This document shows, piece after piece, positions 18,781-59,240 of a stretch of DNA of 64,000 nucleotides (its first letter is position 1; every line of letters begins with the position of its first letter). The position numbers were made by a program, and so were the translations under genes. The DNA comes from Tubulanus polymorphus (Eukaryota; Animalia; Nemertea). The DNA is taken from NCBI RefSeq assembly GCF_964204645.1, contig NC_134036.1, positions 11,077,859-11,141,858 of the forward strand, given 5' to 3'. The notes below the pieces were generated by a model, which saw only the letters and a program-made list of their open reading frames with translations, was not told the origin of the DNA and did not search any database.

Positions 18781-19105
18781 CATAACATTCTAACGTATTG
18801 ATGATGTGAGCAGTCATTAGGAGGGATCTTTAAAGGTGTGCTATCTTTAAATGATGAATAAAGTTAAAAAATTGATGTATATCCTGTTTTTACCCGATTG
18901 ATTTCTGAAGATGAGATTGATCGAATGATTCTCGAAAACAAGAAAAACATCATTGGGACTAATCTGCAACTAAGGAAACACATCATTCAGTCGACCGTCA
19001 TTTTACCCTCAAATAATACCAGTCCTGTCCTGTCAAAACTTTACCAATACGATGTATTAAACAGGAGCCCTTTGAAAGACAAAAAATTCACATGAATTAA
19101 TCTCA

Positions 19106-19111
19106 TTTATT
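19106..19111 (-). promoter_or_regulatory. Candidate polyadenylation signal of the YR transcript
   Basis: First minus-strand AATAAA I could find downstream of the 25208 stop; it lies just beyond the array. Confidence 0.35.
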
Positions 19112-19189
19112 GCTGTATGATGAAACATTAATACAGAAAAAAAATACAACAGCAAGTAATAGATATTAATGAGCAAATTGCACATAGCA

Positions 19190-22100
19190 GACCCCGAAAT
19201 TGCAGCCGACAGTGAGGTTGGAGGGGGTTCGAAATCCCTGATGAAATTGTACAATGAAATGTCGTCCAACTGCCAGTTTCCCCTCCACCTCCACACTGTC
19301 AGCAACAATTGAATGAACAACAGATTGGATAACGATAATAACCTGCATAAAAACGATATAATGTAGCAGCAGAAACCTATAATAAACTGCCCGTAGTTGT
19401 TTATAAGAGACCCAAAAATAGCAGCTGACAGTATGGCGGGCGGGAGGGGACAGTCGAAATCCCTGACATAATTGTACAACAAATGTTGTACAATTGCCCA
19501 ATTCCCTTCCACCTCCACACTGTCAGCAACAATTGAATGAACAACAGATTGGAAAATGATAATAACCTGCGCAGAAACGATATAATGTAGCGGCAGAAAC
19601 CTAATAAACTGACCACATTTGTTTATAAGATACCCTGAAACTGCAGCTGACAGTGCGGCGGGCGGGAGAGATCGAAATCTCTGACATAATTGTACAACAA
19701 ATGTTGTACAATTGCCCAATTCCCTTCCACCTCCACACTGTCAGCTACAATTGAATGACCAAGAGATTGAATAATGATAAACAATTTCAGCATGACAGAA
19801 TTGTAGCGGCAGAAACCTAATGAACTGACCGCAGTTGTTTAGAGACCCTGAAACTGCAGCTGACAGTGTGGCGGGCGGGAGAGATCGAAATCCCTGACAT
19901 AATTGTACAACAAATGTTGTACAATTGCCCAATTCCCTTCCACCTCCACACTGTCAGCAACAATTGAATGAACAACAGATTGGATAATGATAATAACCTG
20001 CGCACAAACGATATAATGTAGCGGCAGATATCCTTAGCAACTGACTACAGTTGTTAAGAGACCCTGGAATTGCAGCTGACAGTGTGGCGGGCGGGAGAGA
20101 TCGAAATCCCTGACATAATTGTACAACAAATGTTGTACAATTGCCCAATTCCCTTCCACCTCCACACTGTCAGCAACAATTGAATGACCAAGAGATTGAA
20201 TAATGATAAACAATTTCAGCATGACAGAATTGAAGCGGCAGAAACCTTATGAACTGACCGCAGTTGTTTAGAGACCCTGAAACTGCAGCTGACAGTGTGG
20301 CGGGCGGGAGAGATCGAAATCCCTGACATAATTGTACAACAAATGTTGTACAATTGCCCAATTCCCTTCCACCTCCACACTGTCAGCAACAATTGAATGA
20401 CCAACAGATTGATTATGATAATAACCTGCGCACAAACGATATAATGTAGCGGCAGAAATCCTTAGCAACTGGCTACAGTTGTTAAGAGACCCTGGAATTG
20501 CAGCTGACAGTGTGGCGGGCGGGAGAGATCGAAATCCCTGACATAATTGTACAACAAATGTTGTACAATTGCCCAATTCCCTTCCACCTCCACACTGTCA
20601 GCTACAATTGAATGAACAACAGATTGGATAATGATAATAACCTGCGCACAAACGATATAATGTAGCGGCAGAAATCCTTAGCAACTGGCTACAGTTGTTA
20701 AGAGACCCTGCAATTGCAGATGACAGTGTGGCGGGCGGGAGAGATCGAAATCCCTGACATAATTGTACAACAAATGTTGTACAATTGCCCAATTCCCTTC
20801 CACCTCCACACTGTCAGCAACAATTGAATGACCAAGAGATTGAATAATGATAAACAATTTCAGCATGACAGAATTGAAGCGGCAGAAACCTTATGAACTG
20901 ACCGCAGTTGTTTAGAGACCCTGAAACTGCAGCTGACAGTGTGGCGGGCGGGAGAGATCGAAATCCCTGACATAATTGTACAACAAATGTTGTACAATTG
21001 CCCAATTCCCTTCCACCTCCACACTGTCAGCAACAATTGAATGACCAACAGATTGATTATGATAATAACCTGCGCACAAACGATATAATGTAGCGGCAGA
21101 AATCCTTAGCAACTGGCTACAGTTGTTAAGAGACCCTGGAATTGCAGCTGACAGTGTGGCGGGCGGGAAGGATCAAAATCCCTGACATAATTGTACAACA
21201 AATGTTGTACAATTGCCCAATTCCCTTCCACCTCCACACTGTCAGCTACAATTGAATGACCAAGCGATTGAATAATGATAAACAATTTCAGCATGACAGA
21301 ATTGTAGCGGCAGAAACCTAATGAACTGACCGCAGTTGTTTAGAGACCCTGAAACTGCAGCTGACAGTGTGGCGGGCGGGAGAGATCGAAATCCCTGACA
21401 TAATTGTACAACAAATGTTGTACAATTGCCCAATTCCCTTCCACCTCCACACTGTCAGCTACAATTGAATGAACAACAGATTGGATAATGATAATAACCT
21501 GCGCACAAACGATATAATGTAGCGGCAGATATTCTTAGCAACTGGCTACAGTTGTTAAGAGACCCTGCAATTGCAGCTGACAGTGTGGCGGGCGGGAGAG
21601 ATCGAAATCCCTGACATAATTGTACAACAAATGTTGTACAATTGCCCAATTCCCTTCCACCTCCACACTGTCAGCAACAATTGAATGAACAACAGATTGG
21701 AAAATGATAATAACCTGCGCAGAAACGATATAATGTAGCGGCAGAAACCTAATAAACTGACCACATTTGTTTATAAGATACCCTGAAATTGCAGCTGACA
21801 GTGTGGCGGGCGGGAGAGATCGAAATCCCTGACATAATTGTACAACAAATGTTGTACAATTGCCCAATTCCCTTCCACCTCCACACTGTCAGCAACAATT
21901 GAATGACCAAGAGATTGAATAATGATAAACAATTTCAGCATGACAGAATTGTAGCGGCAGAAACCTAATGAACTGACCGCAGTTGTTAAGAGACCCTGAA
22001 ACTGCAGCTGACAGTGTGGCGGGCGGGAGAGATCGAAATCCCTGACATAATTGTACAACAAATGTTGTACAATTGCCCAATTCCCTTCCACCTCCACACT

Positions 22101-25100
22101 GTCAGCAACAATTGAATGAACAACAGATTGGAAAATGATAATAACCTGCGCAGAAACGATATAATGTAGCGGCAGAAACCTAATAAACTGACCGTAGTTG
22201 TTTATATGATACCCTGAAATTGCAGCTGACAGTGTGGCGGGCGGGAGAGATCGAAATCCCTGACATAATTGTACAACAAATGTTGTACAATTGCCCAATT
22301 CCCTTCCACCTCCACACTGTCAGCTACAATTGAATGACCAAGAGATTGAATAATGATAAACAATTTCAGCATGACAGAATTGTAGCGGCAGAAACCTAAT
22401 GAACTGACCGCAGTTGTTTAGAGATCCTGAAACTGCAGCTGACAGTGTGGCGGGCGGGAGAGATCGAAATCCCTGACATAATTGTACAACAAATGTTGTA
22501 CAATTGCCCAATTCCCTTCCACCTCCACACTGTCAGCAACAATTGAATGAACAACAGATTCGAAAATGATAATAACCTGCGCAGAAACGATATAATGTAG
22601 CGGCAGAAACCTAATAAACTGACCACATTTGTTTGTAAGATACCCTGAAACTGCAGCTGACAGTGTGGCGGGCGGGAGGGATCAAAATCTCTGACATAAT
22701 TGTACAACAAATGTTGTACAATTGCCCAATTCCCTTCCACCTCCACACTGTCAGCAACAATTAAATGAACAACAGATTAGATAATGTTTATAACCTGCGC
22801 AGAAACGATATAATGTAGCGGCAGATATCATTAGCAACTGGCTACAGTTGTTAAGAGACCCTGGAATTGCAGCTGACAGTGTGGCGGGCGGGAAGGATCA
22901 AAATCCCTGACATAATTGTACAACAAATGTTGTACAATTGCCCAATTCCCTTCCACCTCCACACTGTCAGCAACAATTGAATGACCAAGAGATTGAATAA
23001 TGATAAAAAATTTCAGCATGACAGAATTGTAGCGGCAGAAACCTAATGAACTGACCGCAGTTGTTTAGAGACCCTGAAACTGCAGCTGACAGTGTGGCGG
23101 GCGGGAGAGATCGAAATCCCTGACATAATTGTACAACAAATGTTGTACAATTGCCCAATTCCCTTCCACCTCCACACTGTCAGCTACAATTGAATGAACA
23201 ACAGATTGGATAATGATAATAACCTGCGCACAAACGATATAATGTAGCGGCAGAAATCCTTAGCAACTGGCTACAGTTGTTAAGAGACCCTGCAATTGCA
23301 GCTGACAGTGTGGCGGGCGGGAGAGATCGAAATCCCTGACATAATTGTACAACAAATGTTGTACAATTGCCCAATTCCCTTCCACCTCCACACTGTCAGC
23401 AACAATTGAATGACCAAGAGATTGAATAATGATAAACAATTTCAGCATGACAGAATTGAAGCGGCAGAAACCTTATGAACTGACCGCAGTTGTTTAGAGA
23501 CCCTGAAACTGCAGCTGACAGTGTGGCGGGCGGGAGAGATCGAAATCCCTGACATAATTGTACAACAAATGTTGTACAATTGCCCAATTCCCTTCCACCT
23601 CCACACTGTCAGCAACAATTGAATGAACAACAGATTGGATAATGATAATAACCTGCGCACAAACGATATAATGTAGCGGCAGATATCCTTAGCAACTGGC
23701 TACAGTTGTTAAGAGACCCTGCAATTGCAGCTGACAGTGTGGCGGGCGGGAGAGATCGAAATCCCTGACATAATTGTACAACAAATGTTGTACAATTGCC
23801 CAATTCCCTTCCACCTCCACACTGTCAGCAACAATCGAATGACCAAGAGATTGAATAATGATAAACAATTTCAGCATGACAGAATTGTAGCGGCAGAAAC
23901 CTAATGAACTGACCGTAGTTGTTTATATGATACCCTGAAATTGCAGCTGACAGTGTGGCGGGCGGGAGAGATCAAAATCCCTGACATAATTGTACAACAA
24001 ATGTTGTACAATTGCCCAATTCCCTTCCACCTCCACACTGTCAGCAACAATTGAATGAACAACAGATTGGATAATGATAATAACCTGCGCACAAACGATA
24101 TAATGTAGCGGCAGATATTCTTAGCAACTGGCTACAGTTGTTAAGAGACCCTGCAATTACAGCTGACAGTGTGGCGGGCGGGAGAGATCGAAATCCCTGA
24201 CATAATTGTACAACAAATGTTGTACAATTGCCCAATTCCCTTCCACCTCCACACTGTCAGCAACAATTGAATGAACAACAGATTGGATAATGATAATAAC
24301 CTGCGCACAAACGATATAATGTAGCGGCAGATATTCTTAGCAACTGGCTACAGTTGTTAAGAGACCCTGCAATTACAGCTGACAGTGTGGCGGGCGGGAG
24401 AGATCGAAATCCCTGACATAATTGTACAACAAATGTTGTACAATTGCCCAATTCCCTTCCACCTCCACACTGTCAGCAACAATTGAATGAACAACAGATT
24501 GGATAATGATAATAACCTGCGCACAAACGATATAATGTAGCGGAAGATATTCTTAGCAACTGGCTACAGTTGTTAAGAGACCCTGCAATTACAGCTGACA
24601 GTGTGGCGGGCGGGAGAGATCGAAATCCCTGACATAATTGTACAACAAATGTTGTACAATTGCCCAATTCCCCTCCACCTCCACACTGTCAGCAACAATT
24701 GAATGAACAACAGATTGGATAATGATAATAACCTGCGCACAAACGATATAATGTAGCGGAAGATATTCTTAGCAACTGGCTACAGTTGTTAAGAGACCCT
24801 GCAATTACAGCTGACAGTGTGGCGGGCGGGAGAGATCGAAATCCCTGACATAATTGTACAACAAATGTTGTACAATTGCCCAATTCCCCTCCACCTCCAC
24901 ACTGTCAGCAACAATTGAATGAACAACAGATTGGATAATGATAATAACCTGCGCACAAACGATATAATGTAGCGGAAGATATCCTTAGCAACTGGCTACA
25001 GTTGTTAAGAGACCCTGCAATTACAGCTGACAGTGCGGCGGGCGGGAGGGATCGAAATCCCTGACATAATTGTACAACACATGTTGTACAATTGCCCAAT

Positions 25101-25197
25101 TCCCTTCCACCTCCACACTATCAGCTACAATTGAATGAACAACAGATTGAATAATGATCAACAATTTCGGAATTGTAGCGGCAGAAATCCCTGACAT
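19190..25197. repeat. Tandem array of about 28 units (213-218 bp): near-invariant 100-bp palindromic block plus spacer variants A/B/C
   Basis: 27 intact copies of AATTGTACAACA-AA-TGTTGTACAATT, first at 19470 and last at 25068 (loop CA in the last), plus a degenerate copy at about 19246. Each lies within the inverted pair GCTGACAGTGTGG...CCACACTGTCAGC. Confidence 0.97.
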
Positions 25198-25207
25198 TAC
25201 AATCATA

Positions 25208-25438
25208 CTACTTCTCCTTCAACTTGTAATGTCGAACATGCTGTCGGATCTTGTTCAGCCCCTCCCTCACATTATTTTTGCTATACTTTTTTGCAATAGC
25301 CAATATGTCTTTGTTTTGTGCGGCAACGTCCCGCATTTCTTTCATCGTAGCTTGCGTCGGGAAATTTTCAAATGCCATCCTGATTTTTATTATCTCTGTG
25401 TTCGAAAATCCTGTTTTACCAACTACGGTTGAAAGATT
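25208..25438 (-). CDS. Terminal exon of YR gene (Myb/SANT-like helical domain)
   Basis: TATTTCAG acceptor, phase 0. 76 codons (NLSTVVGKTGFSNTEIIKIRMAFENF...LNKIRQHVRHYKLKEK) followed by TAG. Confidence 0.78.
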   Translation of the reverse strand, partial: NLSTVVGKTGFSNTEIIKIRMAFENFPTQATMKEMRDVAAQNKDILAIAKKYSKNNVREGLNKIRQHVRHYKLKEK

Positions 25439-28400
25439 CTGAAATACGGAAGCAATAATCTAGTCAATAATCATTGATGCACGCATCCTTAAGATATATT
25501 GCAATTACATTTCACAACTGGGCATATTCCTATACACATTAAGCTATGATTCATTCGCACAAAGGTTAAGCTGCTCGGCATGAACTTAGGCTCATTTCAT
25601 TTTTTAATTGAAAAACCTCTGACTAATATTTCTTAAAGAAAATCCAAATAAAAAGAACAACAATGACTAGTTTGATGTTTTGTCGCAGTAGAAGTAGCCA
25701 TTTTCAATGCGGGAAGAAAAAAGCTAGGTCATGATAGGCAGAAACATGATGGAGACGAAAGCAGAGATCTTGTCAGTATACTGTAATGTGCAGCTACATG
25801 TAGTTTTCTTTCCAGCTAATTCAGTTGTCGTTCAATGAAACCCGTAAGTTGAACATGTTCTACTCCAACGTTGATCCTGTGCAAATTTTCCTGTACTGAT
25901 CGATCAAATCTATGGTAATACATTTGTATAGTCGTCAACGGGTCAAGGAAATAAACTTTAGGTACCGTATCAGTAATTACCTCAGATAGGGTTTCTACGC
26001 GGCTTACACGTGTGACGCTCCCACTTTCAAACTGAAAAGTCAAAAGAGTAATAGAAAACAGATGGTTCGATTGCGAAAAAAACTAGGGGTCCACGGGGAC
26101 ACCGCTCACTTTGTACTTAGTTTTGATATTTACTGACCCCTCGTGAACGAGCAGAAATGAATGGCCTTAAAATTCACCGCAATGAAACCTGTCGTAAGCT
26201 TACAATATTTGCAATTCATTGTCGATTCAATGTTTATTATCTATTCAACTTCCAAGTTAAATGGATATACATGTACTAAAATTGAAGGCCCCAGGTGAAC
26301 ATAAATGTACAGAAACCAAATTACCTTCATCTTAATACACATGTTAAGAACACGTCATTAGCTACCCCTTAATTGTTACACCAGTTAATTGTGGTAACAA
26401 AATATACATTGTAGGTATTCAAATTACAAAAGTGCATTGATTTCAAAATTCAATGTCCTTTGGGGAGAAGAAACAGGATAATATCAGCTCCGTGCGATAT
26501 ATAGCTCCTCAACCATCTATTCACCAAATATCTAAACAACGCTGAAGACAAACCCTTTGAAAAATCCAAAAATTACTGAATTTCATCTGTAAGATCGTTC
26601 ACACGAAGAATTTATTTCGAAACGTTCACCAGGTTTAATCATCCGAGGCTAATCAGACGCGTTGTGGCGATAGAGTGAATCTGCCTGTGAAAAACACCGT
26701 ATTTGATTGGCTTAATATTTAGACTGGTGGCCGCTGAGCAATAAGCTGGGCCAACTTCGTTTATCGGAGTTAGTCGACTATGAAACTAAATGAAACCGAA
26801 TGTCTGTTAGTCGGAACTATGGTCCGTAAATCGCCGACCACGCGATTGAGCACGGTCGCTATAGTTTGGATCTAGGTTCAAGATGGCCGACACTGTGAAA
26901 TACGTAACCACAGAGCGTTCGGTTATTAGTTCCGACCACTAATCGAATAGCTACGAAAACCGAAGTTGGCCCAACACAGTCCCAAGTGGGCAGAATATTA
27001 CAGATTCAATCATCCTTTTCTGAAATTTCAGTTGATTCAAATTCCAGACTGAGGATGAAACTACAGTGGTACGTCGTTACAGCGAATTTCACGGGAACAG
27101 ATGTTTGTTATACCATCCTCCCTCGGCAGGTATTCGAACCCACCGAAATCGCTACACTGAGCCACAACACGCCACAGCACGAACCGTGGCATGCTCGTTG
27201 CCATCAGGTTCAAACCTGATGGCATAAACCTGATGGTTATAACCGATATTTTGTTCTATCCAGTATCAAATTCGTAACAACAAAGTACCATTGTATTACT
27301 CTATAACAAGGAAATCAGGCAATTACCTCAGAGCCAATATCGCTTCCACCATTGTTACTATCAGCACATTTAGCGGTCTGTAAAATACAATAAAACATTG
27401 CAGCAGGTGAAGTGTAATAGGGCTTTTGGGGTTTTTTCAAGAGGGGGTTTTGGGACACTGCATAACTGTTTCAATAGCCCTATAGTCCCTGGACCTTACA
27501 AACAGATAGCAATTAGTGAGCACAAATATTGCGAAGGTACATAAGCCGCAATCGCACGGAGACGATTTTGCCCTTGCCAAATTCGCACGGATCAGGCTCG
27601 AGTCCAATTTGGCCTGAGTCTATTAAGAGAGCACGTTCTCACGAAAACCACTCACTCGATACTAAACAATGCTCAAATAAAGTGCAATGAGTTTCTTTCG
27701 GAACCTAATAATTTACGGTACCAGTTGCAATTCACACACAATCATTTGTCTCAAGATTGGCTCGAACCTGGTTCGACGCTTTTGTTCGGGCGAGATTTGG
27801 CACGAGCGTCTCTATGGTGAAGCACACTACCCAGTCATACCTAGATACAGAGAGTTTCCCGAACAATCATGTCGGAGTGATAGTAAACTATTTACCTATA
27901 TCTGGTGACCCCTGTCCTTTCAGTCTAATAACATACGTTTTCAATAAAACAACCGTGCACAACTCAGACGGATCTACGTAGGGACCTATTTCGAGGGTGT
28001 TCCAAATTATAAAAGACCACTCAGTATTATCGGCTTCCTTATCCATACCCTTGTACCTCCGGATAATGTTGAAACTATATACAATATTTGACCATTTTCA
28101 TAGTTTTATGACTATAGGTGTTTTTATTTAAGCAACTCGTATAAAATCGCTTTGCTCCGTCGATTACTGCCTCGTGGTACAAATCGAATCGCCTTAAATA
28201 AATGACCCTACTCTCCACAACCGGAACCTGAATTTTCTGCGATTGAAAAAGCCGCCATTTTGTTTTTGATCTATCACTGAACGCTCCAATGTCGTAGCAA
28301 ATCGAATCAAAGCGCTTCGATGAGCGATTTGGCCGCGTTGAGTACTCGCGTTGGCGATTTGGTTAAATAAATGGACGTTGTAGGCAAATCGTTGTAGGCG

Positions 28401-31400
28401 CGTTGCTTAAATAAATGGGCGATTCGATTCGTGTTGATTCGAGATGCTTAAATAAAAACGCCTTATGTATTTTTACAAGAATGTGCTTAGGCATCCTCGC
28501 TAACCAGGGTTTGATTGCCGCTAGCTGAAGCTCACGCCTTGCCGCAAACCCTTCATTGGTCTATTATGCATTGCCCGATATATCTTGGCAAGGCGGCAAC
28601 CAGTTTATATGTTCAGCTCAGATGCATAGCGAATCAGCAAGTGTAAAACAACGCATCTGATTGGCTTAAAATACATAGACTGGTGGTCAATTAGTGGCAA
28701 CCTGTCGACCCAAGAAATCTTTGGCAATGTATATAGACCAATGAAGGGTTTGCAGCCAGGGTTTCCGTGTTAGCGTGAGCTTCAGCGGGCAGCAATCAAA
28801 CCCTCGCAAACGAGGATCGTACTAAAAGAAATTCAAGCTAAACGGTGGCGTCATGCGGAGAGGGAAAAAATCTGAATTTTGTGATTTTGTGATATACAAA
28901 ACGGTGTCCCGTATTTTAGACATGACTGTGCGAACTAAAATATAACCAACCAAGAGGTGATGTCCACAGCGAGCAACTGTTAGTTTGACCAACTGAACTG
29001 AAATGATGTATCTCGGAATATGGTCGGAAAATTAATTACTTATCTGTTTTTTAAGATAATAATAACTAATCATAAATTAGTTACAATTGAATGAGATTGA
29101 GATATTGGAGGATGTTCATTTTTGCATTAGAAGATTTTAGGGTTAACATGACCATGCATGTTTGCACAATATCAAATTCAACATAGCCAGCTAGGTTATT
29201 TTGGATCTCCACTTATCAATCATTGGATTATCATTTTCATTTTCCTGCTAGGACATAGTTCCCCAGGCTATAAAACATCCAATGAAATTCTAGATTTACC
29301 TCGACTTCCATTTTATCGTCTTCAAAAGGGGTTGAAATATTCTGAAAAGAAAACAATTTAGATTATTCAGAATTCATTTGTCCCGAAGTTAGGAGTCAAC
29401 TGTATGAAACAATTTATATTCTTAGGTATTTGTTTGTTTATAGTTTTCATTTTCATTCCTTATTTCTAAACCACTTGTTCTACTAAGTGACTGAAATGAA
29501 AATCGAATAAATCAAATATTTTCTTATTTATTTCCATAATCAAACTTAAGCGTGGGTTATGTCGACTTCTGGCTCGGTGCCTTCCGGTGCAATTGGATTT
29601 ATCGGTGACTAAAATTAGCCGCAAATAGCGCCAGTTGCAGCCTACGCTTTCGAGGGCAACCGACTTGGGCGCAACTGCGAATCGATGGAACTGAGGGTAG
29701 GAATTCCAGCCAGAGACCGCATATAAAGAGTAAAAATGTGACCGCTAACAATCGTCATCGGTATTTATTTATAAACTTTCAAATTCATATTCTAAATTTA
29801 TAACTTTTGAATTATTTTATAACTGAATTTGAATTTCTATTCTTAAAATGTTAATCACACTACTATCTGCAGTCCGTTCAGTTGCTAGTAATCGTAACCG
29901 CCATACGTAAGCGGGAAAGCAACTGGCTGTATCTCATACCCTGCTAGTCAGGTTCAGTTGCTGGAAATCACAGCGCAGTCAACATAAGTAGGGATACGAT
30001 TGCAGTTGCGCCGGTGTAGGCGTCGCGTTGCTGGTCGACAAAAGCCAGTATTTAAGCCTGGCTTAGGTCGAAAAGTGACGCGACGCATACCGATGCAACT
30101 GAGAGCAGCCCAAATTATCTCGACTGCAGAGAAACACTAACAGATAAAAGACACATAATTACCTCTGCTTCCGCCTGCTTATTTCCACCAGAGGTTGAAA
30201 TTGTCTAAAAGATTTGAAAAAAAATGGATTTCATGCATTACTAGAAGTTAAATTCTGATTTGCACAATTCAACTATCAGAATCATATATCATATTTAAAA
30301 CCGTTACATAGAAGATTGACTTTTACATCTCTATCAATTACGTATAATCAAAATATTTGACGGTTATATAGGTTATCTTATTATTCCTTACCTCTAAACC
30401 ACTTGTGTTGCTAAGCGATGACTGAAATAGAAAACACGGATTTTATCTATTTTCATAATTGTGGTGCATTTGTTTCTAATCAGGTGGCGTAAGATATTGG
30501 GTATATTCCCTTGTATAAAAGCAATGAGAAATCCGAATGCGCGTAAGTGACTGCCGATACACAGGCTCAGTGTTATCATTCTCAATGCTTCTACCGAATA
30601 CAAAACTATCTTTACTCCACTTTGATTCAGTCGATTCTCTGGAATAGTTATACGTGATTCTTAAAAGATGCGGATAAAACCCGACTGACGGAGCGCTCTG
30701 AATCGGATTTTAAATGAAAGTGTTTGTTTCAATTGAAAAAAGCCAAACGAATGTGGGTTTCCGTGTGTGAAGTGTCCCATAACAGCGATAAGAATTATCG
30801 TAAATCATAATTTCGGGTAATTAGGGTAAACGTAAGCGTTTTTGCAGTGATATGCTGCCAATACTGCATTGTTTTTGGTGATTAACAAATTGATTCATAT
30901 TCATTAGGAAATCAAGAAGTACCTGCATCAATGAATGCACCTTCGTTGCGGTCTTACGTGTTTCCTTTTCGCCAGACGTCAACATATAGAAACGCTCTTG
31001 CGTCATCAAACTATGGCTCATCAACTGAGCCAAACTTTCTCTTATGTCGGGGTCCTTGCCTCTACATTCTGTTGTGACAGATTTTCTGATGAGGCTATTA
31101 TTCACAACCCTTGCATAGCCGAGGGCTTTCTCGACATAGCTTTTCAAAGTTCTGTTTGAAACAAAGAATTCATAGAAATTATCGAATATCGAAAAGTCGA
31201 TATTGTGATTTGATTGTGGAGGCTTTTGAGCAATTACCATCGAATATGGAAGAATCTCGTATGATTCAAATATAAACACAATCAATCACAGCATCTTGAC
31301 AATTTCCTCATACAAAATCCCGTCAACGACATAGCAGACAGATGGAATGACTAATGAAAAGTGATAACGGTAATGAATTCAAATTTATGTAATCTCACTA

Positions 31401-34400
31401 TTCAGTAAGTCCAATGACACGATGCTGTCGTGGCTGCTTTACTAGAAACTTACATATATAACTGTTATGAATGCGTAATATCAAATGAAGCGTCGTTTGG
31501 GACGTTGTATTGACTTTTCTTATAATACGTATCTGTTGACAAAGCCTCATATGTTGAATTCTATGTCAATATATGAGGGCTTCGCCATGTAACAGATGGA
31601 TGAGAACTGCCAACATTTTTGTACACACAATCGGAATAATATCCCAAACGGTGCCTCATAAATCAATGACGGACGAATTCCATTCTCTCTTCGCTTTGGT
31701 GCAACAGAATTTGAGCATTTCCGCATCAAGCTAAATCTATCATATCAGAGTAATTGTTACTTCTGATCGAAACATGATGTTTAAAGATAACATTGATTTG
31801 TTTGGTTTGATTGGTTAACATTGATTTGTTTGTAGGGATTGCCAACTTCATCAATTACTAGAGTACATACTACAGTCTACCTCCGATGTAACGTCGTTGG
31901 ATTTACCGTAGATTCATCTTATCGTATTATTTCCCAGTTTCCAATTTTTCCTTCTAAAATATTAGGCCTTAAAGAACCCTCGAATATACCGTATTTTTCA
32001 TAACGTAGATCACTTATATCGACGTATAGATTATTTGATCCCAATTAGTCAAATCAACGTAATTATCCTCGAATGTAACGTATCGCAAAAAATTAAAAAA
32101 TGAGAAAAAATATAACATGTATCACAGATAGTATCACAGATAACTATCGGAAAAATCCAGGGAAACTTACTGGTTTATTTTATTAGAATCTTTAGGGTTT
32201 CCACCCCAAGAGACGAAAATCTGCTGCCTCTCATTTCTGATGTTAACATTTTCGATTTGTGGCAGCACCCTATCAGCATATAGCTGTAACTGATTGAATA
32301 GGGCGCTGTCTAGAAACAAATGGACAACGGGAGAGGTTGTCACAGTTTTGTGACCATCATCCAGTCCAGTTACCTAGAAAATATAAAAATTTATTAGTTG
32401 CATTTATAATTTCCAAATCAAGCCTATGAGGTACAATATGAGTCAAAATTCAGTTGGTTTGTTTCCTGCGAAAGGCAACCGAGGGATCCAAATTTAGACA
32501 TGTTCCTACCAACCATATCCAAGTTACTTAAAAATCCAGACCCTAGAAGTAACAAGCAGAAGCTGCTCTTTGTACCAATACTTGAGTTATAGCTAGACAC
32601 TGGCCCACGTCCTTAGCAGGGCCTACCCTTCATGACCAGTGGCCGAGACAATCCATGCCCAATTGAGAGATTTGAAAAGTTCAATATTCGAAGCCCTCTG
32701 GTGAACATATACAGCGAACAGTGCCCGGAAACTCACCACAATCAATTGAAATTACAGACACGCGGATCGAAAGTACACGCAATAGCTCGTTGAGACCCAG
32801 ATGGGCTAAACGTGAACCAATTTCTGGGACAGATAAATGACAACACGTGTAACGATACTGCATAGAAATATAATCATAAAGTTGTGATCTCATTTTGAAA
32901 TTTTGCAGTCAAATTGATCGAAAACGATAATTTTACAAACAAGGGATCCTTATACAGACATTTGTGGTCTCCTGCTAAACTTGACCGAAAAGTTTATGTT
33001 GTGTAAATTGAAGAAAATACCAAATCTCCAATATTTACTACCCTTTTGAAATCATTTGGACATCAATGAAATAGCACTCCCATCTGGATATCTGGATATA
33101 TCACCAGATGTGCTCTCCTACCATATCAATACTACCCAACATAACCAAAATCCAATACATGATCACAACGTTATAGCCTAGCCCCACGCACATGGCAAGG
33201 AAAAAAGCATTTTTTCCTCGTGAAAAAGGTTTTCGATAATTTTTCTTATACCATGTTGAACGTTTTATAGCGTTTTGCCGTATGCGGCGGGCTTTTGGCT
33301 TCATCCAAGCATATTACTAATACCAGAGTGCATATTCGAGATTTATGGATAATTCAAGAAGAAATCATCTAGAATTCTGTTCCATTGATATTTTTCTGCA
33401 AATTCAAATTTAAGAATACGAATCTTTTTCTGCAATTTATGTAGCACATTATATCAGATTCAAAACCTGTTGAATCCATATTAATATGGGAATTGGGCAT
33501 GACTAATTCATAAGATTATCATACATGCATCATAAAAACACAAATGACAAAACTCAAATATAACTAACTTTAAATCGAAAAAAAAGTGAAACGAATGCCA
33601 TGGTAAAATCAAACAGAGAATCGTCTGAATCCAACATGGCGTCAAGAGGCAACTGATGGCGCATGCGCGAGGCATATCTCATTGGATCTCCAAAACCCAT
33701 ACCGAAACGAAATAGAACTAACTTTAAATCGAAAAAAAAGTGAAACGAATGCCATGGTAAAATCAAAATCTCACCTTCATGCAATACAAATCGCCCTCCA
33801 TAGTGGCATTTCTCACGTGTTTTATGGTCAAATTTGCGATCGGCCCAGCTCTGCAGGGATTTTGTACCGAAATTGCAAATATGAGGTAGTTACGAATACA
33901 GCTGAGGGTTTTTCGATCGACTGCTTCATCCGACATCAGTGATGTCACTGCCCTCCTCGCCTCGTCTGAGTACAATACATTCCTTATCTCTGTTGGATTC
34001 AGACGATTCTCTGAAATAATCACATTCAATTCTCAAAAATTCGGGAAAATCTTACTTATCAGGCGCACCAACTGCTCTGAATTTGACCTTGAAGAAAAAT
34101 GTTTTGTTTAAATTGAAAAAAAAGCAAAGCCAGTCTTTCCAGCCTGAGGCGAGACTATAAGCACACCAACCACTATGAGTCGGATTTTAAATAAAAGTAT
34201 GTTAGGTTAAAATAGAAAAAAAGCGAAGCGTAAATGTCTTCAAGTAGACATTATAGACTCAGGAGGGAATCGAACCCCCGTGCCAGTCTCTCCAGCCTGA
34301 GGAGAGACCGGGCGCGCCAACCGCTCTGAGTCGGATTTTAAATAAAAATATATTTGGTTAAATTGAAAAAAGCGAAGCTTATAGGTCTATCAAGTAGACT

Positions 34401-37400
34401 TTATAGACTCAGGAGGGAATCGAACCCCCGTGCCAGCCTCTCCAGCCTGAGGAGAGACCGGGCGCGCCAACCGCTCTGAGTCGGATTTTAAATAAAAATA
34501 TATTTGGTTAAATTGAAAAAAGCGAAGCTTATAGGTCTATCAAGTAGACTTTATAGACTCAGGAGGGAATCGAACCCCCGTGCCAGTCTCTCCAGCCTGA
34601 GGAGAGACCGGGCGCGCCAACCGCTCTGAGTCGGATTTCAAATAAAAATTTGGTTGGGTTTTAAATTGAAAAAAAAGCGAAGCTTAAAGGTGCCAGTCTC
34701 TCCAGCCGAGGAGACACTCGGTGTGCCAACTGCTCTGAAAACAGATCTTCTGGTCCCGTGAAGTTCACTGTAACGAGGTTCCACTGTATTTAGCAAGAAA
34801 ACTGTCAATCCATTGTAACCTATGAAAAGTGTTCGAATCAACATACCGCTGTCTATCAATTGTTTATCGATATAGCGCTTGGCCTTGGTCTTCTTGCCGA
34901 TCGTCGTCCAATTCACGGTGCTCGCGTGCGAACGACTGACCAGTTCCGCCGTTTGATTCATTTTTGATACACCGACCTTTAAAAAGATAGTAGGCCTATA
35001 TGATGCGGATTTCAAGAAAATGTTCGACGATTTCTTGATTTTTCAATTAGTATATACTTACAGATTCGACGTACAACAAAAATTTACGCCAAACCGCAAT
35101 GTAGGCTTCAATAGTGCCTGGCTGTTTTCCTAAGTCAACCATTGATTTCAGATATGCTTTTAGTTTACATTCGTTTAGCGTAAACTGCGTTGCGACAAGC
35201 ATGTCTCGAATCCGCTGCCTTCTTTGAGAGGCAGCGTTTGTGTCGACGTTTTGTAATCCGCAGCTCCAAGAAATGAAATTCGAGACAATGTTGTCTGTCG
35301 GGAGCTGGGGATACTCTGAATCCGGTTTCTTTTTGATTTCGTTCGGTACGGCGCTTAAAATTTCATCTGCTAGTTGTGTATCTGATTGATCGGTTTCGAC
35401 CGCTTGCACTAAGGTAGAAATCAATGATAATGATAATCGACTGATTGATATAACAAGTATCAAAATATCTCAGGTAGTTATAAACATGAACTTTTAAAAT
35501 TGTAGAATCTTAAGAATACATGAGCTTCATCTATACTATAAGAGACAAATGGCGAAACTTTGTCACGAGTTGGTGCGGTCTGTGCGCTATGCAGCTTTTG
35601 GTACCAAATGAAAGATACTGGTCGTGTGTAGTTTAAGATAAAATTTTTGCTGAAACGATAAATTTTAGATAGATCTTTGGACCCTTTAAGTTTGGACGCT
35701 CTGCGCGACGTCACTGCGCTCGCTGATCCAAATAAACAGTGCCCGCTGATTTATCTTAGCTATCTGTTCGAAATATTCAAAGGCTTATTCAAAGTCAAAT
35801 ACACTACGCTTAGTTACAGATTACGCAATTGCAGCAGTAAGACCGCCATACAGCCAGTAGAGGAGAGCCCTAAAACACATTAATTATAATCAATAATCAA
35901 CAAGATATATGATGATTAAAGTGTAATAAACTCACGAGCTACGTCATAACTTCCTTTACAATACGGCCGGTGTTTATCGAGGCGATAGACGCGCATTCTG
36001 CAATGCAGACATTCTTTTTGTTTTCGAGCGTCTTTGTTTTTATTATCGCGCCGACGTTTTCGATATTGCGGTGGGCTTGATCTGAAAATTTTAAGGGTCG
36101 GCCGTGAACATTCGACATCTTACATGGAACAAACTTTCCATAATCAATTTCAATTTGATCTACTGTGAAAATGTTCTTGTTCATTACCCTGATGTACATA
36201 CTGTATAAAACTGACACAAACGATAAACTTTAAAAGTAAGTAGAAATTCAATTAACTAAAACTTCTAGAGTTATCATCGATGAAACAAAAAAGCCACAAA
36301 GAAGTGTCATTCTGACCAGTACCTCCAGTTCAGTGAATCCGTTCCGGACCAGTGGTGCACGAGTCGCAGGTGTCTCGGCACTCGTGTCACCGCCTTCTTG
36401 CACACCGGACACTTATGTGTTCTTCTTATGTATGTATCCTTCTTTTCTATATATCAATTACCATTCATATTTGTTCAAATCTATCTGTTATTTACAAAGA
36501 CGGACAAAAAGAAACACATCGGCCCTTTTGAGCTAGTGATATTTTACCATTATTTGATTTCGATTTCGAAGCAACCGACGACTCTTGTTCCATTTCTAGC
36601 ATATTTCGAAGAAAATTCATGAAAAGAAAATGTATTTTGAGAATAGAGCCCCAGGATGAGCATAGTAAACTTGAAAATTGATAATATCGAGCTTTTTGAT
36701 GCGCAGAGAGCATTTATATTTTACCATTATTTGATGTCAAAGCCGGCGAATCTTGTTCCATTTCTAGCAATTTTCGAAACACAATTCATAAAAAAAGAAA
36801 AAAATATGTTTAGAATAGGGGCCAGAGATCAGCATGATAAACCTGAAAATTGATGAAAGCTGCCGCAGTTGAGGACTTGTGTGATAGAGTATCTGGGAGG
36901 ACCGCTGGGCCGTTAGAGGCTGGGCAACACAGCCAGTTTCACAAAAGGTATAGCAATGTGTATATATCATTTCGGTGATTTTAAGAGACTTTTCCGTAGA
37001 GTTAAGTCTCTGGAGACTTATTTTCACCTGGTTCATAGAAGAATTCTATATTGCACAATGCTTAGTACGGCATTTAAGATTGAATTGAATTTTTCCTCGT
37101 TTTCCTGCGTTTAAATACTATACTGGATGGTTCCTTTATATAATTAGTGTCGTCATAGTTTGAATAGTTTATTTTTAATTTTGCAATCGGTCACAGTCTG
37201 GATCACTTCTCGGATCTCTTCTCGTATTCACAATAAATATCAAGGAAACACTTTTAGTCAGGGGAGAGAGAGTCAGATATGCCGAGATAAGGCTCGATAC
37301 TCAACGTGTTACAGCCGATAAAGACCGACCTGCGAGTCGTGAGCTTGGACATAAAGTTGAATAGATATTCGCCTCATGTAATCGAAAATATACTTTTTAG

Positions 37401-49400: not shown

Positions 49401-52400
49401 ATAGATAAGTTCCACTAGACAGATTGACACAGACAGAAGGAAGACATAGGCCTACGGGATAGACCTTGAAGCCTACAGAAAAACAAGACGGGATGCAAGA
49501 CACAGAAAGAAACAAAATCCACGAGGCTTATTACACAGATAAACACAAAACACACAGATCAGAAGACAAGACCAGATCGCCTACATAACAGTAGACTAGA
49601 TAGACAGACACAAAGAAAAGACCCACTATATGGATTAACACAAAACAGACAGGGGAGAAAACAGAAAGATAAGGTCCATTGCTTGAATTAGGCCATGCAC
49701 GAAACAGACAGGTTAGAAGGCAGAATGACATAAAGCACTGTACGGATAAACACACATTAAACACACATTCGACAGACAGAAAGACAAGTAAGAGACGAAA
49801 AACAAAACAGAAAGATGAATACAGAATGACATGGCACATAAAACGAGCATAGAGACGAGTTTTTGCATGTTTTTAGTCAAGTAATTTAGCAGATAGTCCA
49901 ATAAACACTAATCCGTAAATTGTAGATAATAGAATTCGATGAATTTTAATGTGATAAAATTTACTGACCCGAAGCTACAATGTTTCGGCTGCTGACTGAC
50001 AGCCATCATCAGGTGGAATGCCTCAATCATTCCACCTGATGATGGCTGTCAGTCAGCAGCCGCAATGTGGTGGTTTCGAATGAACTTTATCATGTAGAAT
50101 TTGAATTGTGGGACTTATTCGATTGCTTGAGTAAAATTTTGAGATATTCAATTTTCTATTGGATGTAGGATTTTTAACTATTGGTAGTATGATTTTGAAA
50201 ATGTGAATTTGAAAGGCAAACATTCAGTGATTTGGACATATCGTATTGTCAGATATCAAAATAGGACTACTGAGTTAAAATCAAACTGAGAGTAAAGTTG
50301 TTATAAAACGATGCTGTAATCTGCAAGATTTTTGATCCACTTGATCTACTTTATAAAGTAAAACCAGTAAAAACTTGTAGGCTATACGTTTTGTTTTTGA
50401 GGCCCTATCAATAGAATAATGTGGGTTTTAATTTGGTGTGAACTGAACTGTCTACAGGCCCTCCCCCAGAAAATTTTTGTAAATTTGAAGAATTTTAAAT
50501 TTGACCTATTTGCATTGATAGCAAAGGTCTTATTAAGGGAAGAAATTTAATGTACAATGATTTCAGCCCTCACTAATCAACCAATAATCATACTAACTGT
50601 AACATTGGGTACGAGTAAGCAAATTGACAAAATAACTAAAATGTAATAGGTCCCTATTTAGATAGGCCTATGTTTAATCTAAATGTATTATACCAATCTA
50701 TTCGCTGCCCTAATGACATTTTTTGAATGGTTACTTTAGTAAAAATATCTAGCCTTTGACTAAACAGAGAATGTTGGCCCCTGCATTTTGAATCTAGGGG
50801 GAACCTCTTATTCTGATGCCTATGAGTTTCTAAATTATATTACAGTAGGCCAATACTTACCACATGAAATTTCGTGTTTTTTCATGAATGATGTACACAT
50901 AGGTGGTGTCAGTAATCTTCGGGTCTGATATGCTCCTCACAGTTCCTCTATATTCTAGAAGGAAGTCTCCTTTAGCGAAGGGTTTGAGGGTGAAAACGCC
51001 TCGGCCTGCAAAATAATATTCAAAAAGGCACTCCTATGAATGAAAAAAATATTAGATTGGGCCACACCAAAAAATCATGTGTTTTCGGGCCAGGGCAATC
51101 ACAAAAATGGATATGTAGGTAGGGAATATTTTTTTTCTTTTTGTAGAAAAATATTTCAGGCTCTATTGACAGTGGGTACTAGGTAGGTCAATAATTTTTA
51201 GAGAATGAAATTTCCAGTTGAAAATATGATTAACAGCTAGAAGACCACAATAATAAAAGGAAGTTGCGTTTTTTCTAGGCCTACAATAAACTATAAAAAC
51301 TAGGGGTCCAGGGACACAATGCCACTTGGTAAGTGGTTTGAAATGCTCAACAATCTGACAATTTGCAACAATGATGGTCTCCAAGAACATCAGAAATTTT
51401 TGGAATTCTGTGGCCCCTCCCCTCCGCCTCGACCAATCAGTATTTTTCTGCAGACATTTTCTGTTTTCCAGAATTTTTCTGATTTTCTAAATGCAGAAAA
51501 ATTCTGTAATTCAGAAGTTTCTCCCAAGTGTCATTTCTGGACATGTATAACAAAAATCTGTAAATAAAACTTTAGGCCTAGATTGTAGAGCAAGAACGAG
51601 GTCCATAATATCTATTTTATACAGAAATTTGGTTGTTTTCAATGACCTAAACATGTCAAACATAATAGGGCTCATCATCCTCTCATCATAAAACCACAGT
51701 TCAAGTACGAATAAAATGAGTCAAAAACCTTACCGTAGAGCAGTAAAAAACTCCAAATTGACTAGGCCTACCAGTATCTAAGACATCTTGGATGACCTAC
51801 ACACATTAAAAACAGTAGTCCCATCCTCCTTTTGCCCTTAATACAATACCAAGTTATATAAGAAAATCCGTAGGCTCCTTTAAAACATTAGACTATGAAG
51901 CGGGAATAAGCTCCAAAATGGCTATGGCAGCCATTTTAGATTACCAGTCAAAAACAATAGGGTTCATCCTCCTCACACCTAAAGTCAAAAGAAAATCAAC
52001 TAAAAACTTAAGCCTGTAGAGTGGGAACAACATCTGCACGCCCGCACGCACATCCGCACAGACACAAGCCATGACAATACCCCTCGCATCCTACAGCCAA
52101 GCCGAGGGTAAAAAGTGTGTTTAGCGATCAAAAATGGCTACCGGACAGCTAGTGTACGTGATTCGTAAGGTAGATAGACCTACCATGCCCGTAGATCAAA
52201 AATTGGACAAAAAGCGAACAGAATAATTGCTACCGGGGTAACTGGGATCATTCATTTATTATGTACGCATAAAATTCTAATTTTTCAACCCCCCTCTGTA
52301 CGCAAAATCGGCCATTGTTTCATATACGTAAAGCATTACAGTACGTAATTGCACTGACCCCTCTCCCTCCCCTGGTGTGTACATAATAAACGAATGACCC

Positions 52401-56437: not shown

Positions 56438-56518
56438 CTATCCCAAAAACAGACGTGGTCCAAAGATACCCACCTAAAGTACATCAGACTCAATGGGAAT
56501 CACGGCGACATGGTCATC

Positions 56519-56570
<52 letters not shown>

Positions 56571-59240
56571 CCCTATCAACGCTCCACATGAAGACCCAAG
56601 TGAAAGTGGCGAATATGAACGTCTAGTCGATGCCTCTTGTGAAGATGATGGAGATGGAAGTCAAATCAATGCTTCTCGAGAAGTTGATGAACAAGAAAAT
56701 CAAATAGCTGCCAAGTATCGATACATCATGAGAAATGGTAGGCATGTTTTGATAAATTGAATACAATAAATTAAACAGGCTTTGAGCCTTAAGTACAGCC
56801 TACATCATTAAAGCCTTTGCTACCAAATAACCAGATGACAACGTGTTAACAATGCTTTTATTTCACATTTGTAATAATCACTTGCTCTGGCACTAAATAT
56901 TCCACTTCGTTGTACATTTCAAATTCATATTATGTCCATTCTACTCATGAAATATTTTCAGTTACCATTCCGGTCTATAAAAAAAATGATGGAAAAAGGG
57001 ATTACAGAAAGGTTAATCATTGCTATTATTGCAAAAATACGTTCACTTCTAAAATTGCACCCCATTATTGTAATATCCATTACAATGAAGAGAAAGTGAA
57101 AGAAATCATGTCATTACCTAATGGATCAGCAGAGAAGAAAAAACGCCTGTACGAACTCGAGAATCTGGGCAATTTCCATCATAATATTAAGGTATACTAA
57201 TGACTTTGACAGTTCGTAAATCAAAACTAGTTCTGCACCTTGCATATATTCCCAACCACCCTTACCAAAAATGTGATTTGCTAATTAGATCTCTTTGATA
57301 AATGTTAAATGTATACAGGCATACCCAGCGCAAATCAGAATAGTCTAATTCAAAATAACTTCCACAAAATCTATTATTTTTGTAATTTTTGGGGTAGCCA
57401 TAGGTTTTTACATACTGCTATACTAATGGAGCAAATTAAATACGATGGTTTATTCTAGATGAAAGGCTTTTTTACTGTACATGTATTCATTAGTCATGTT
57501 TTACTGCATTATCCACTTTCCAAATCCTAGGAGGCCAAATTTTGCAAACGAACCCGTCAAAACTTACAGGGTTTTTTCTTGAAAATATGAGGTGTTCACG
57601 CGAACGCGCGGTATCGCGGTATCGTCTACTGTTTTACTTCCAGCTTTCATTTTACAACCAAGAATTTTATTTCAAATTTGATTTTTAGGAAATTGATTTG
57701 ATTTTTGGGAGCAAATTTGTTTTGCACCATGTAAATTTGTACTGCGCAAAATTTGTCCATGGTAATTGTGCAATGGTCGGGAAAATATCTTTCTTAATTC
57801 ACTGCTAGGGATGGATGACGTTGATATGCTAGTTAGCAATGTGATTGTATGCCAAATTCAATCAAATTTTGTTATGCAAGTAAACATCAAATCAAATGTG
57901 GTACCGGCAACTTGACTGTGGCAAGTGAGAATTCTGTCAGTTTGTTAAGTAGCACTGGGTTACTGCGCTTCAATTTCTTATGCATTTCAATTAAATTCCC
58001 TTCAACTTTTCTCCCTGAGTAAATCAATTATTAGTGAAATCTATTTCCTTATACTTGTTTGATAATTTTCGGATTTGGATGCCCAAAATAAAATTCAAAT
58101 TTCATTAAACATGAACTGATTTTCATAACTAACGATCGAGTGGAACTTGGCGCCATCTAGTGAGTCCCCGTACCCCATTCAATTTTATTCCGCATTCAAA
58201 TCAAATATTGTAGTAAATTTTTTGTACCACCCTTACAGGTGATAAGTAGTGGTGATGGTGGTGAGCTTGTAGTGAATCGGAGACCAACGTCCGTAGAGAG
58301 CCCTTCTAACTTCATCTTTTGTGAGTACTGCAAAGGTCTCTTTCTAAAAAACTCACTATGGAAACATATGAAGGCATGTCTTCTCAAACCTTCGTCAAAG
58401 GAGCCATCTGCGGACTATGTGAGATGCGGCCGCCTTATGGTTATGCCGTTCCTGAGTGAGGATGACGAGCAGATCGCTGCAGTAAACGATGTCTTTAATT
58501 TGAAGGAAACTGCTGCCAACCCTGGCATCGCAAAAGCTGTCAGGAATGATATCTTGATACGGGAATTCGCACTCTCCATGTTAGGCAGACTGGGAACTTC
58601 CGAAGAGCAAAGATTAAAAGATTTCGCAAACGTCAGATCAAAAGTTCGTCTGATTGGCCGTTTATTGATCAAATTGAATGAACAAGCCGGAACAAAAAAT
58701 GATTTAAACTATTATATAACAGGAAAGGAGTTCGATGCTGTGGTCAAAGGTGTTAAATCGCTTTCAGAAGAAAGTGACTCCCCACAACTGGCTGTCCAAT
58801 TAGGAAGCTACATTAAGCATTCCATAATTCTTAAAATTAGCTACGGCGTCAAGATTAACTCCGTTGACATTCAAAATGAAGGAAAAGACTTTGAATATTT
58901 ATACCGTGCCCATTGGAACAATATGGTGTCGTGTGTTGCTAATAGGAGGAAACGTCTTCGAAAGATCAACACGAAATCTATCACGCCACTTACGGATGAC
59001 CTTGTGACCTTAAAGAATTGGAGCGTTGATGAAATACAAGAAGGACAGAAAAATCCTAATCCAGACAGAAAAGAGTGGACTTTCATGGCTCAGCTGATCT
59101 TGGTGAGAATCGTGATGTTTAATAAAAGACGCGTTTCTGAAGTTGCCGAAATCAAATGTCACGAGTTCGTTGAATGCCAACAGACTGAAAATACTGAAAT
59201 CACTAACTCTTTGGATGTCATTGAACAAACACTCGTTTAA
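56438..59240 (+). CDS. Second tyrosine-recombinase-like gene (Zn-binding N-terminus, FNKRR.SE box I), stops before the C-terminal catalytic residues
   Basis: Exons about 56438-56737 (acidic, poly-Asp), 56962-57191 (HCYYC...KIAPHY..IH...LENLGNFHHN) and 58239-59240 (VNRRP...CEYCKGLF...LWKHMKAC...IVMFNKRRVSEV). Phases match. TAA at 59238-59240 lies 2 nt before a GTATGC donor-like site. Start codon not located. Confidence 0.75.
56521..56568 (+). repeat. (GAT)16 microsatellite encoding poly-Asp in the acidic exon of the second YR gene
   Basis: Direct count; in frame with the downstream exons. Confidence 0.95.

Follow-up and report, generated by a model that had tools for sequence, protein, structure and literature searches.

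Probable remnants of two lineages of large Crypton-like transposons with an upstream SET gene in the nemertean Tubulanus polymorphus

Crypton DNA transposons were reportedly described by Goodwin in 2003. In animal Cryptons, the tyrosine recombinase (YR; DUF3504) is the sole recognisable domain (Kojima and Jurka, 2011; PMC3212892), and a 2026 overview of YR elements covers DIRS, Ngaro, Crypton and Starship (PMC13465315). YRs with zinc-finger and SAM-like domains are also known from endogenous nimaviruses, where they integrate specifically into microsatellites (PMC10871703). Here, a locus of the nemertean Tubulanus polymorphus is compared with these systems. The stretch analysed (the window) comprises 64,000 nucleotides of contig 12 (NC_134036.1, positions 11,077,859-11,141,858) and lies near the end of this 11.55-Mb contig, in a genome of 268 Mb. 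The window probably holds the remnants of two lineages of a group of large, Crypton-like YR transposons of spiralian animals that lack a reverse transcriptase (RT) and in which a zinc-finger/YR/Myb-like gene is preceded by a KMT5A-like SET gene. The first lineage (~51-19 kb, minus strand; its recombinase gene is termed YR1) is best read as an old low-copy member with cis features of its own, namely intronic tRNA-like units and a 3' palindromic array, and the second (YR2, 56.4-59.2 kb, plus strand) as the dead 5' fragment of a relative of a probably active 24-kb family.

This 24-kb family was uncovered by a search for YR2-like sequences, in which a 744-aa open frame appeared in five near-identical copies. 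The element measures 23.9 kb, and its copies, located on contigs 1, 2, 6, 7 and 12 (the contig 1 copy at C1:18271600-18295541), are 99.2-99.96% identical when 40-kb regions are aligned. All five have identical ends that lie within (TA)n on both sides, with unrelated outer flanks; the ends read ...TATATA/CTAAGATAATGTACGATTAACGGGGCG... and ...CCCCGTTAATAGTATGTTTTCAG/TATATA... (the slash marks the boundary). The only terminal structure is a subterminal inverted repeat of ~13 bp, with neither long terminal repeats (LTRs) nor long terminal inverted repeats. The family is thus probably a currently active, microsatellite-specific YR transposon.

The YR protein of the 24-kb element (P0001, 1179 aa) combines an OTU domain (PF02338), zinc fingers, a PF00589 domain (29-33 bits, the cut-off being 27.1) and a weak Myb-like tail, and an annotated uncharacterized protein of Tubulanus polymorphus, LOC141907100, is 99% identical to the protein of an element in this genome. 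In each copy, a SET exon (PF00856, E 3.6e-8) is located ~9 kb upstream of the YR frame on the same strand. The open frames of the element give SET, OTU, YR and the weak Myb-like match; of its remaining frames, the ten largest were scanned, and none gave an RT match. A 162-bp array at positions 12175-14222 of the element (C1:18283774-18285821) consists of 66-nt mini-exons, each encoding 22 aa (DNVLTSKCSSDDSKQVSEFTCS), and 96-nt introns; every mini-exon has its own acceptor and GTAAGT donor, and the N-terminus of P0001 is built from several of them. A 91-bp repeat is additionally present in three places of the element, in both orientations.

The pairing of SET with YR is not restricted to these five copies. 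Of 17 SET hits in the genome, 10 are followed on the same strand by a YR hit no more than 25 kb downstream, with a chance expectation estimated at ~0.001 per hit; the ten linked loci comprise the five 24-kb copies, four further diverged loci and YR1 in the window. Homologues of the YR were found in Lineus, Dreissena, Tegillarca, Elysia, Lottia and one fish. SET is missing from all of these annotated proteins, and this speaks for two separate genes and against a SET-YR fusion. In the mussel Dreissena polymorpha, a member of a second phylum, SET exons again share the strand of the YR gene (P0018) and lie 8.5 kb before it; a (TA)47 run is located 3.5 kb downstream of the YR gene and is directly preceded by a perfect palindrome of ~130 bp centred on GGGGCATATATCATATATATGATATATGCCCC (positions 20400-20646 of the Dreissena locus L046). 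The arms of this palindrome, GGGGCATATA/TATATGCCCC (10 bp), recur at two places close to the right end of the 24-kb element of the nemertean; being short, this likeness between end motifs is only suggestive. DUF3504 (PF12012) was detected at E<=1 in none of nine YR family members, and PF00589 in five of the nine, the YR1 exons matching neither; PF11917 (the DUF3435 captain) was found in none of the nine, and a scan of viral contigs gave no relative.

In the window, the SET domain of the first lineage is split between two exons (Table 1). As for all protein searches and foldings reported here, stop-free pieces were used singly, exon by exon. Two such minus-strand pieces, 50860-51033 and 42188-42499, both match Pfam SET, and their top PDB matches are to KMT5A/SETD8, over chain residues 34-71 for the N-terminal and 85-147 for the C-terminal piece (E 1.8e-8 and 1.2e-4 for the two exons). 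To judge by these matches, the two pieces are contiguous halves of a single KMT5A-like SET domain. The N-terminal exon has canonical splice sites (acceptor CATAG/, donor TG/GTAAGT), and the acceptor and donor of the C-terminal exon occupy positions identical to those in the 24-kb element. Despite a gap of 8.4 kb, the two exons can be paired because their canonical sites join in phase and the junction codon, TG/C, yields ...FM-C-IDAT, which corresponds to YCVDAT of KMT5A; in-phase SET exons upstream of YR1, as claimed from the sequence earlier, are thereby confirmed. The ELxYDYG motif of KMT5A is retained as ELRYDYG. From the SET donor at 42275, no convincing phase-0 acceptor leads straight to the acidic or zinc-finger exons of YR1. 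A short repeat is present in two copies between the SET and YR1 exons (39598-39729 and 40934-41065), both encoding the same minus-strand peptide, LTKSSERMRMLSPLHHLTIRSQVFV.

The identification of YR1 relies on comparisons of its catalytic exon. Taken singly, the YR1 pieces gave no recombinase match in Pfam, PDB or BLASTP, and against 1.8 billion representative proteins the catalytic exon retrieved only four short fragments as relatives; two further matches among these proteins, one to a HEAT-repeat protein and one to a protein with a weak Tudor-like Pfam match, look spurious and were set aside. When aligned together with four homologues against the PF00589-positive family using hhalign, the catalytic exon gave a probability of 69% (E 4e-5), with the second Arg, the His and the Tyr aligned; the alignment of box I is weaker. 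No substitution of the catalytic R, H or Y occurs in five YR1 homologue sequences, and the language-model (atlas) neighbours of the exon are all recombinase-fold families, tyrosine recombinases. Comparison with two paralogues over 146-148 codons gave ratios of nonsynonymous to synonymous substitution rates (dN/dS) of 0.09 and 0.13, and YR1 can therefore be regarded as real coding sequence under purifying selection. For the exons at 32170-34032, the synonymous divergence from two paralogues (0.21 and 0.40) lies above that of the flanking introns (~6% and 6-16%). Considering the hhalign alignment, the invariance of R, H and Y, the language-model neighbours and dN/dS together, it is with moderate confidence that YR1 is identified, from sequence, as a tyrosine recombinase of the R...R...H...Y type.

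Regarding gene structure, the YR1 exons in the window are all stop-free, the sites at the donor of the box I arginine exon, the donor of the catalytic exon and the acceptor of the last exon are canonical GT/AG, and the junction between the catalytic and the last exon is in phase (CAG/GTACTT ... TATTTCAG/). The original prediction had presented YR1 as a stop-free, spliceable gene with complete catalytic positions. Open exons, canonical sites and R/H/Y were all recovered, whereas the identity of the enzyme carries the moderate grade just given and being spliceable says little by itself, given that 27-152 chance combinations of in-phase GT..AG pairs exist per exon pair. The probable acidic piece of YR1 resembles an acidic D-Y-I/E-P stretch found ahead of the zinc finger both in the 24-kb element and in the protein of Dreissena. 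In a relative on an ENA contig, the HKT exon is present and the catalytic part is fused with the Myb-like tail in one exon. Within the last YR1 intron, the piece 30397-30660 is similar to the start of 33766-34032 and is accompanied by a tRNA-like match at 30694-30746.

Elsewhere in the genome, YR1 has 3-5 partial paralogues, some with stops or with the HKT motif lost, and the window copy is the best preserved. The copies on contig 3, at C12:1119xxxx and on contigs 2/21 share with the window just 30236-37841, introns included; in the contig 3 copy, GQEA replaces GHKT. A more distant paralogue on contig 4 is 53% identical in the catalytic exon and 49% in the last exon (C4:18460313-18460528), the latter being the sole homologue of the last exon of YR1.

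This contig 4 locus also links YR1 to the array that follows it. In the window, array-like sequence starts at 25197, 11 nt beyond the TAG stop of YR1 (25208-25210), and thus the claim that a structured array of about 6 kb comes right after the gene held. Tandem Repeats Finder (TRF) delimits the array at 19189-25158, with a period of 216 (27.7 copies) or 429. Each unit contains a nested inverted repeat of ~105 bp, with outer arms GCTGACAGTGTGG/CCACACTGTCAGC and an inner palindrome, ATTGTACAAC-ATTT-GTTGTACAAT. The 27 cores are spaced by 213-218 bp, most units agree completely over a 91-bp core, and conservation averages 99% in the core against 88% in the linker and rest of the unit. As single-stranded DNA, the core and its flanks fold at -29.4 kcal/mol (z -6.4 against shuffles). 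Genome-wide, the unit was found in this locus and as ~3 units at C4:18460718-18461172, with no other match, so that the scattering that could have detached the array from YR genes is not observed. The contig 4 units begin ~36 bp after a YR1-like last exon, with a YR1-like catalytic exon 3 kb upstream of them. Both inverted repeats differ between the two loci by compensatory changes, the outer arms by C:G to T:A and the inner arms by T:A to C:G. This co-location and these compensatory changes tie the array type to the YR1 lineage and indicate that the palindromes are constrained.

Another cis feature of the first lineage is formed by two arrays of tRNA-like units, which, as had been noticed in the sequence, indeed lie in two introns of YR1. 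ARAGORN made seven calls in them, all on the minus strand, as Leu(CAG) and Gln(CTG). The unit folds as a cloverleaf with a 7-bp acceptor stem, a 12-bp 'anticodon' stem and a perfect B-box T-arm (GGTTCGATTCC), followed by a downstream hairpin and a T6 run. An Rfam scan of the whole window returned no family, including tRNA, at gathering score; at E<=1, the best match of array 1 was mascRNA, below threshold (33 of 42.5 bits, E 7e-5). All 19 genome matches of the unit fall in YR1-family copies (window, contig 3 and contigs 2/21). An assignment to tRNA genes or to a dispersed short interspersed nuclear element (SINE) was rejected, given the lack of an Rfam tRNA match and the restriction of the matches to the YR1 family.

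The second lineage is represented by two YR2 pieces that are 47-51% identical to residues 493-914 of P0001, a region including two zinc fingers, the N-terminal domain and the box I arginine. The frame ends at a stop (59238-59240) that coincides with an exon end of P0001. When the family profile was run over the whole window, it detected these two pieces only, with no later YR2 exons and no catalytic residue past box I; the expected place of the next exon is occupied by a high-copy repeat. This ~940-bp repeat has an internal 154-bp duplication, and a member of its family is also located inside the SET intron of the 24-kb element. The segment 56510-60193 (3.7 kb, repeat included) is duplicated at C12:9908761 with 98% identity. 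On its exon content, YR2 is a truncated 5' fragment and not a partner enzyme.

Table 1. Position, strand and supporting observations of the recombinase-related and repetitive features (coordinates are those of the window; a slash marks an exon boundary)
Feature	Position	Strand	Basis or remark
Tandem array of 216-bp units, 27 cores, alternating as 429-bp dimer	19189..25197	-	TRF
YR1 last exon, C-terminal Myb/SANT-like tail	25211..25459	-	acceptor TATTTCAG/ inside piece; TAG stop 25208-25210
Degenerate duplicate (tRNA-like fragment and start of box I arginine exon) within last YR1 intron	30397..30746	-	sequence resemblance
YR1 catalytic exon: LIRKSVTT (second Arg), MSH (His), RFY (tyrosine)	30824..31285	-	donor CAG/GTACTT after ...HSLMQ
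YR1 exon with GHKT motif (beta-hairpin region)	32170..32373	-	HKT exon also in relative L048
YR1 box I arginine exon (NPCRAGPIANL...YCMK)	33775..34032	-	donor AAG/GTGAGA
tRNA-like array 1, 3.7 units of 150 bp	34129..34691	-	ARAGORN, TRF
YR1 N-terminal (SAM-like) exon piece	35050..35469	-	stop-free; paralogues 81-85% identical
YR1 zinc-finger exon piece (CLHCRMRVYRLDKHRPYC)	35919..36119	-	stop-free; profile match very weak
tRNA-like array 2, 5.4 units of 150 bp	37659..38496	-	ARAGORN, TRF
YR1 acidic exon piece, probable (DDIDDDNDDDADYEPS)	38866..39066	-	motif only
SET exon, C-terminal half (GRLINDG...ELRYDYG)	42275..42470	-	Pfam SET and PDB match; acceptor TTTTAG/, donor ATG/GTAAGT
SET exon, N-terminal half (GRGVFTLKPFAKGDFLLEYRG)	50861..51033	-	Pfam SET and PDB match; in-phase splice to 42470
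YR2 fragment, zinc-finger exon piece	56850..57197	+	51% to P0001 residues 493-569; profile E 2.5e-29
YR2 fragment: second zinc finger, N-terminal domain, box I arginine (NKRRVSEVAEIK)	58164..59237	+	P0001 similarity, family profile
High-copy ~940-bp repeat in expected place of next YR2 exon	59258..60193	.	at least 35 copies, 92-95% identical

Besides these features, the window contains sequences that belong to other elements or to the host. A 63-bp tandem array with ~23 units and higher-order periods of 126-270 bp extends from 60885 to 62372; its minus strand is open for 522 aa, with no Pfam match. It is followed at 62372-64000 by the start of a very young high-copy retroelement, the boundary of which abuts a (TA)8 run. 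The RT open reading frame (ORF) at 62595-63998 on the minus strand (RVT_1, E 2e-33) belongs to this separate element, of which at least 14 copies are 99% identical, and this agrees with the earlier statement that no RT is part of the YR unit. Correspondingly, no RT was found between 19 and 60 kb of the window, so the combination that marks DIRS and Ngaro elements, an RT/RNase H beside the YR, is lacking. At the other end, an intronless ORF of 315 aa at 11419-12366 encodes a rhodopsin-type G protein-coupled receptor (7tm_1, E 6e-19); this ordinary host gene lies at a distance of 7 kb from the palindromic array. On a larger scale, the last 2.3 Mb of contig 12 (~9.27-11.33 Mb) harbour ~18 YR/SET loci, a striking share of the genome total, and this end zone looks like an accumulation area for YR/SET elements.

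The interpretation of the window as the remnants of two transposon lineages has to be weighed against several observations that count against it. YR1 is not detectably similar to the YR of the 24-kb family by BLASTP or by the family hidden Markov model, and AlphaFold modelling of the single catalytic exon, with a five-sequence alignment, was poor (pLDDT, the predicted local distance difference test score, 54). None of the paralogues of YR1 carries SET exons, those on contig 3, at C12:1119xxxx and on contigs 2/21 lack the array as well, comparison of copies, covered on contig 3, at C12:1119xxxx and at C12:99xxxxx in pieces of about 3 kb, did not reveal the ends of a YR1-type element, and the end motifs of the 24-kb family (TTAACGGGG, GGGGCATATA) and long (TA)n runs are absent from the YR1 unit of the window. 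That SET, YR1 and the array formed one mobile unit is accordingly suggested by analogy with the 24-kb family and by the contig 4 locus. In the cofactor motif of the SET domain, LINDG stands where KMT5A has LINHS, the ND for NH being found both in the window copy and in the 24-kb element, and methyltransferase activity is uncertain because of this change. Neither a second copy of the array core nor a partner site was found elsewhere in the window. A search of sequencing runs for transcription found the stretch in three runs, always as DNA-like contigs spanning introns and exons alike, with nothing in the possible RNA run (n=1) and no splice joints seen. Finally, the low copy number and low dN/dS of YR1 are also compatible with a domesticated gene.

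According to this last alternative, YR1 was domesticated from such a transposon, with or without the SET exons, and now belongs to the host; the array would serve as its long structured 3' untranslated region or as a regulatory satellite, and the tRNA-like units as processing signals or intronic RNA polymerase III genes. Cryptons have provided animals with domesticated YRs repeatedly (PMC3212892), and open exons, purifying selection, the undefined ends and the few paralogues, which are partial and less well kept than the window copy, would all fit such a gene. However, YR1 keeps its catalytic R, H and Y, which the known domesticated Crypton genes have lost (PMC3212892), its paralogues resemble decaying transposon copies, and it resides in the transposon-rich end of contig 12 amid many YR and SET fragments. 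Moreover, no orthologue beyond the four short fragments emerged from the 1.8 billion representative proteins, and the sequencing runs gave no evidence of expression. Domestication is therefore considered unlikely, if the least so of the alternatives. It is likewise improbable that the array and the tRNA-like units are incidental, i.e., an ordinary satellite and a SINE-like repeat with no role in the element. Transposons commonly seed tandem arrays, the copy number is uneven (27.7 units here against ~3 on contig 4), and the YR1 copies on contig 3 and at C12:1119 do without the array; on the other hand, neither repeat type occurs away from YR1-family copies in the whole 268 Mb, conservation of the palindromic core by far exceeds that of the linker, and the core is kept with compensatory changes in a paralogue that is only ~50% identical in protein.

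Far less probable than either is the arrangement put forward in the original prediction, a single mobile element or locus that exceeds 40 kb and whose two head-to-head recombinases act with SET and the array. The parts adjoin in the window, and on contig 3 a YR2-like open frame lies ~9 kb from a YR1 copy. Yet the second recombinase, taken at the time to be a different YR gene, breaks off after box I with the high-copy repeat in its continuation, its segment is duplicated by itself, together with that repeat, at C12:9908761, the orientation on contig 3 differs, and no other locus has the whole arrangement. A recurrence of the parts in the same order could be upheld only for SET and YR, which pair at ten loci and in Dreissena, whereas the partner YR is not conserved and the array accompanies YR1 on contig 4 only. 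Two separate lineages, one of them dead, remain the preferred explanation of the window.

If indeed transposons, the elements of this group would move by YR-mediated excision to a circle and subsequent re-integration by crossover in a short shared sequence, which in the 24-kb family would be the TA repeat. In the YR1 lineage, the palindromic core would, as the leading idea, be a putative binding or recombination site of YR1 that was amplified in tandem, and the SET protein may mark chromatin (H4K20-type) at the element or at its target. A much more comprehensive scheme would unite all of this: an unrecognised, superfamily-level group of spiralian YR transposons that encode their own H4K20-type methyltransferase, in which the palindromes behind the YR1 stop serve as a multi-site substrate resembling attC hairpins and the tRNA-like RNAs take part in the life cycle. 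This scheme is unlikely.

Should SET be a true gene of these elements, they could write a chromatin mark on their own DNA or on their targets, and this would provide mobile elements with a new route to counter host silencing or to ready integration sites. With near-identical copies placed precisely in (TA)n, the 24-kb family is a candidate for an active animal YR transposon with a simple target rule, and site-specific eukaryotic recombinases of this kind are of interest as tools for genome engineering. The window locus adds two unexplained cis features, the array with its conserved hairpin core and the private tRNA-like units. To our knowledge, no transposon family has been described to carry a histone lysine methyltransferase, and full-text literature searches in which tyrosine recombinases or Cryptons were paired with SET or OTU domains, with microsatellites or with large size yielded no description of such an element; apparently, the SET-carrying group of YR transposons is undescribed so far.

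Several known systems nonetheless share individual traits with these elements. In bacterial integrons, the gene of a tyrosine recombinase lies beside attC arrays, imperfect palindromes able to fold as hairpins. The likeness to the array behind YR1 is one of analogy only; no cassettes or ORFs lie between the palindromes here, and the host is a eukaryote. KMT5A (PR-Set7/SETD8), the H4K20 methyltransferase to which the SET domain is closest, differs in that the SET sequences described here are transposon-borne and multicopy. Starships are likewise large YR-mobilised elements with cargo genes; they are, however, confined to fungi, carry a DUF3435 'captain' YR at one end and are much larger, with variable cargo (PMC10104507). 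Endogenous nimaviruses resemble the present elements in being large, in residing in animals, in encoding a multi-exon YR with an N-terminal zinc finger and a SAM-like domain, and in integrating into simple repeats (PMC10871703). In contrast to the elements described here, in which no viral genes were seen, nimaviruses exceed 100 kb and target (TAACC)n or 28S ribosomal DNA, and their (AT)n-targeting members use a DDE transposase (PMC10871703). The likeness to Cryptons covers the general design: a eukaryotic mobile element with a YR and no RT, often with introns, without LTRs and with ends that fit recombination in a short sequence (PMC3212892). Beyond this design, the YR is accompanied here by a KMT5A-like SET gene, an OTU domain, zinc fingers and a Myb-like tail, and the active 24-kb family, located in (TA)n, has internal tandem arrays and a YR that matches PF00589 rather than the DUF3504 of CryptonA.

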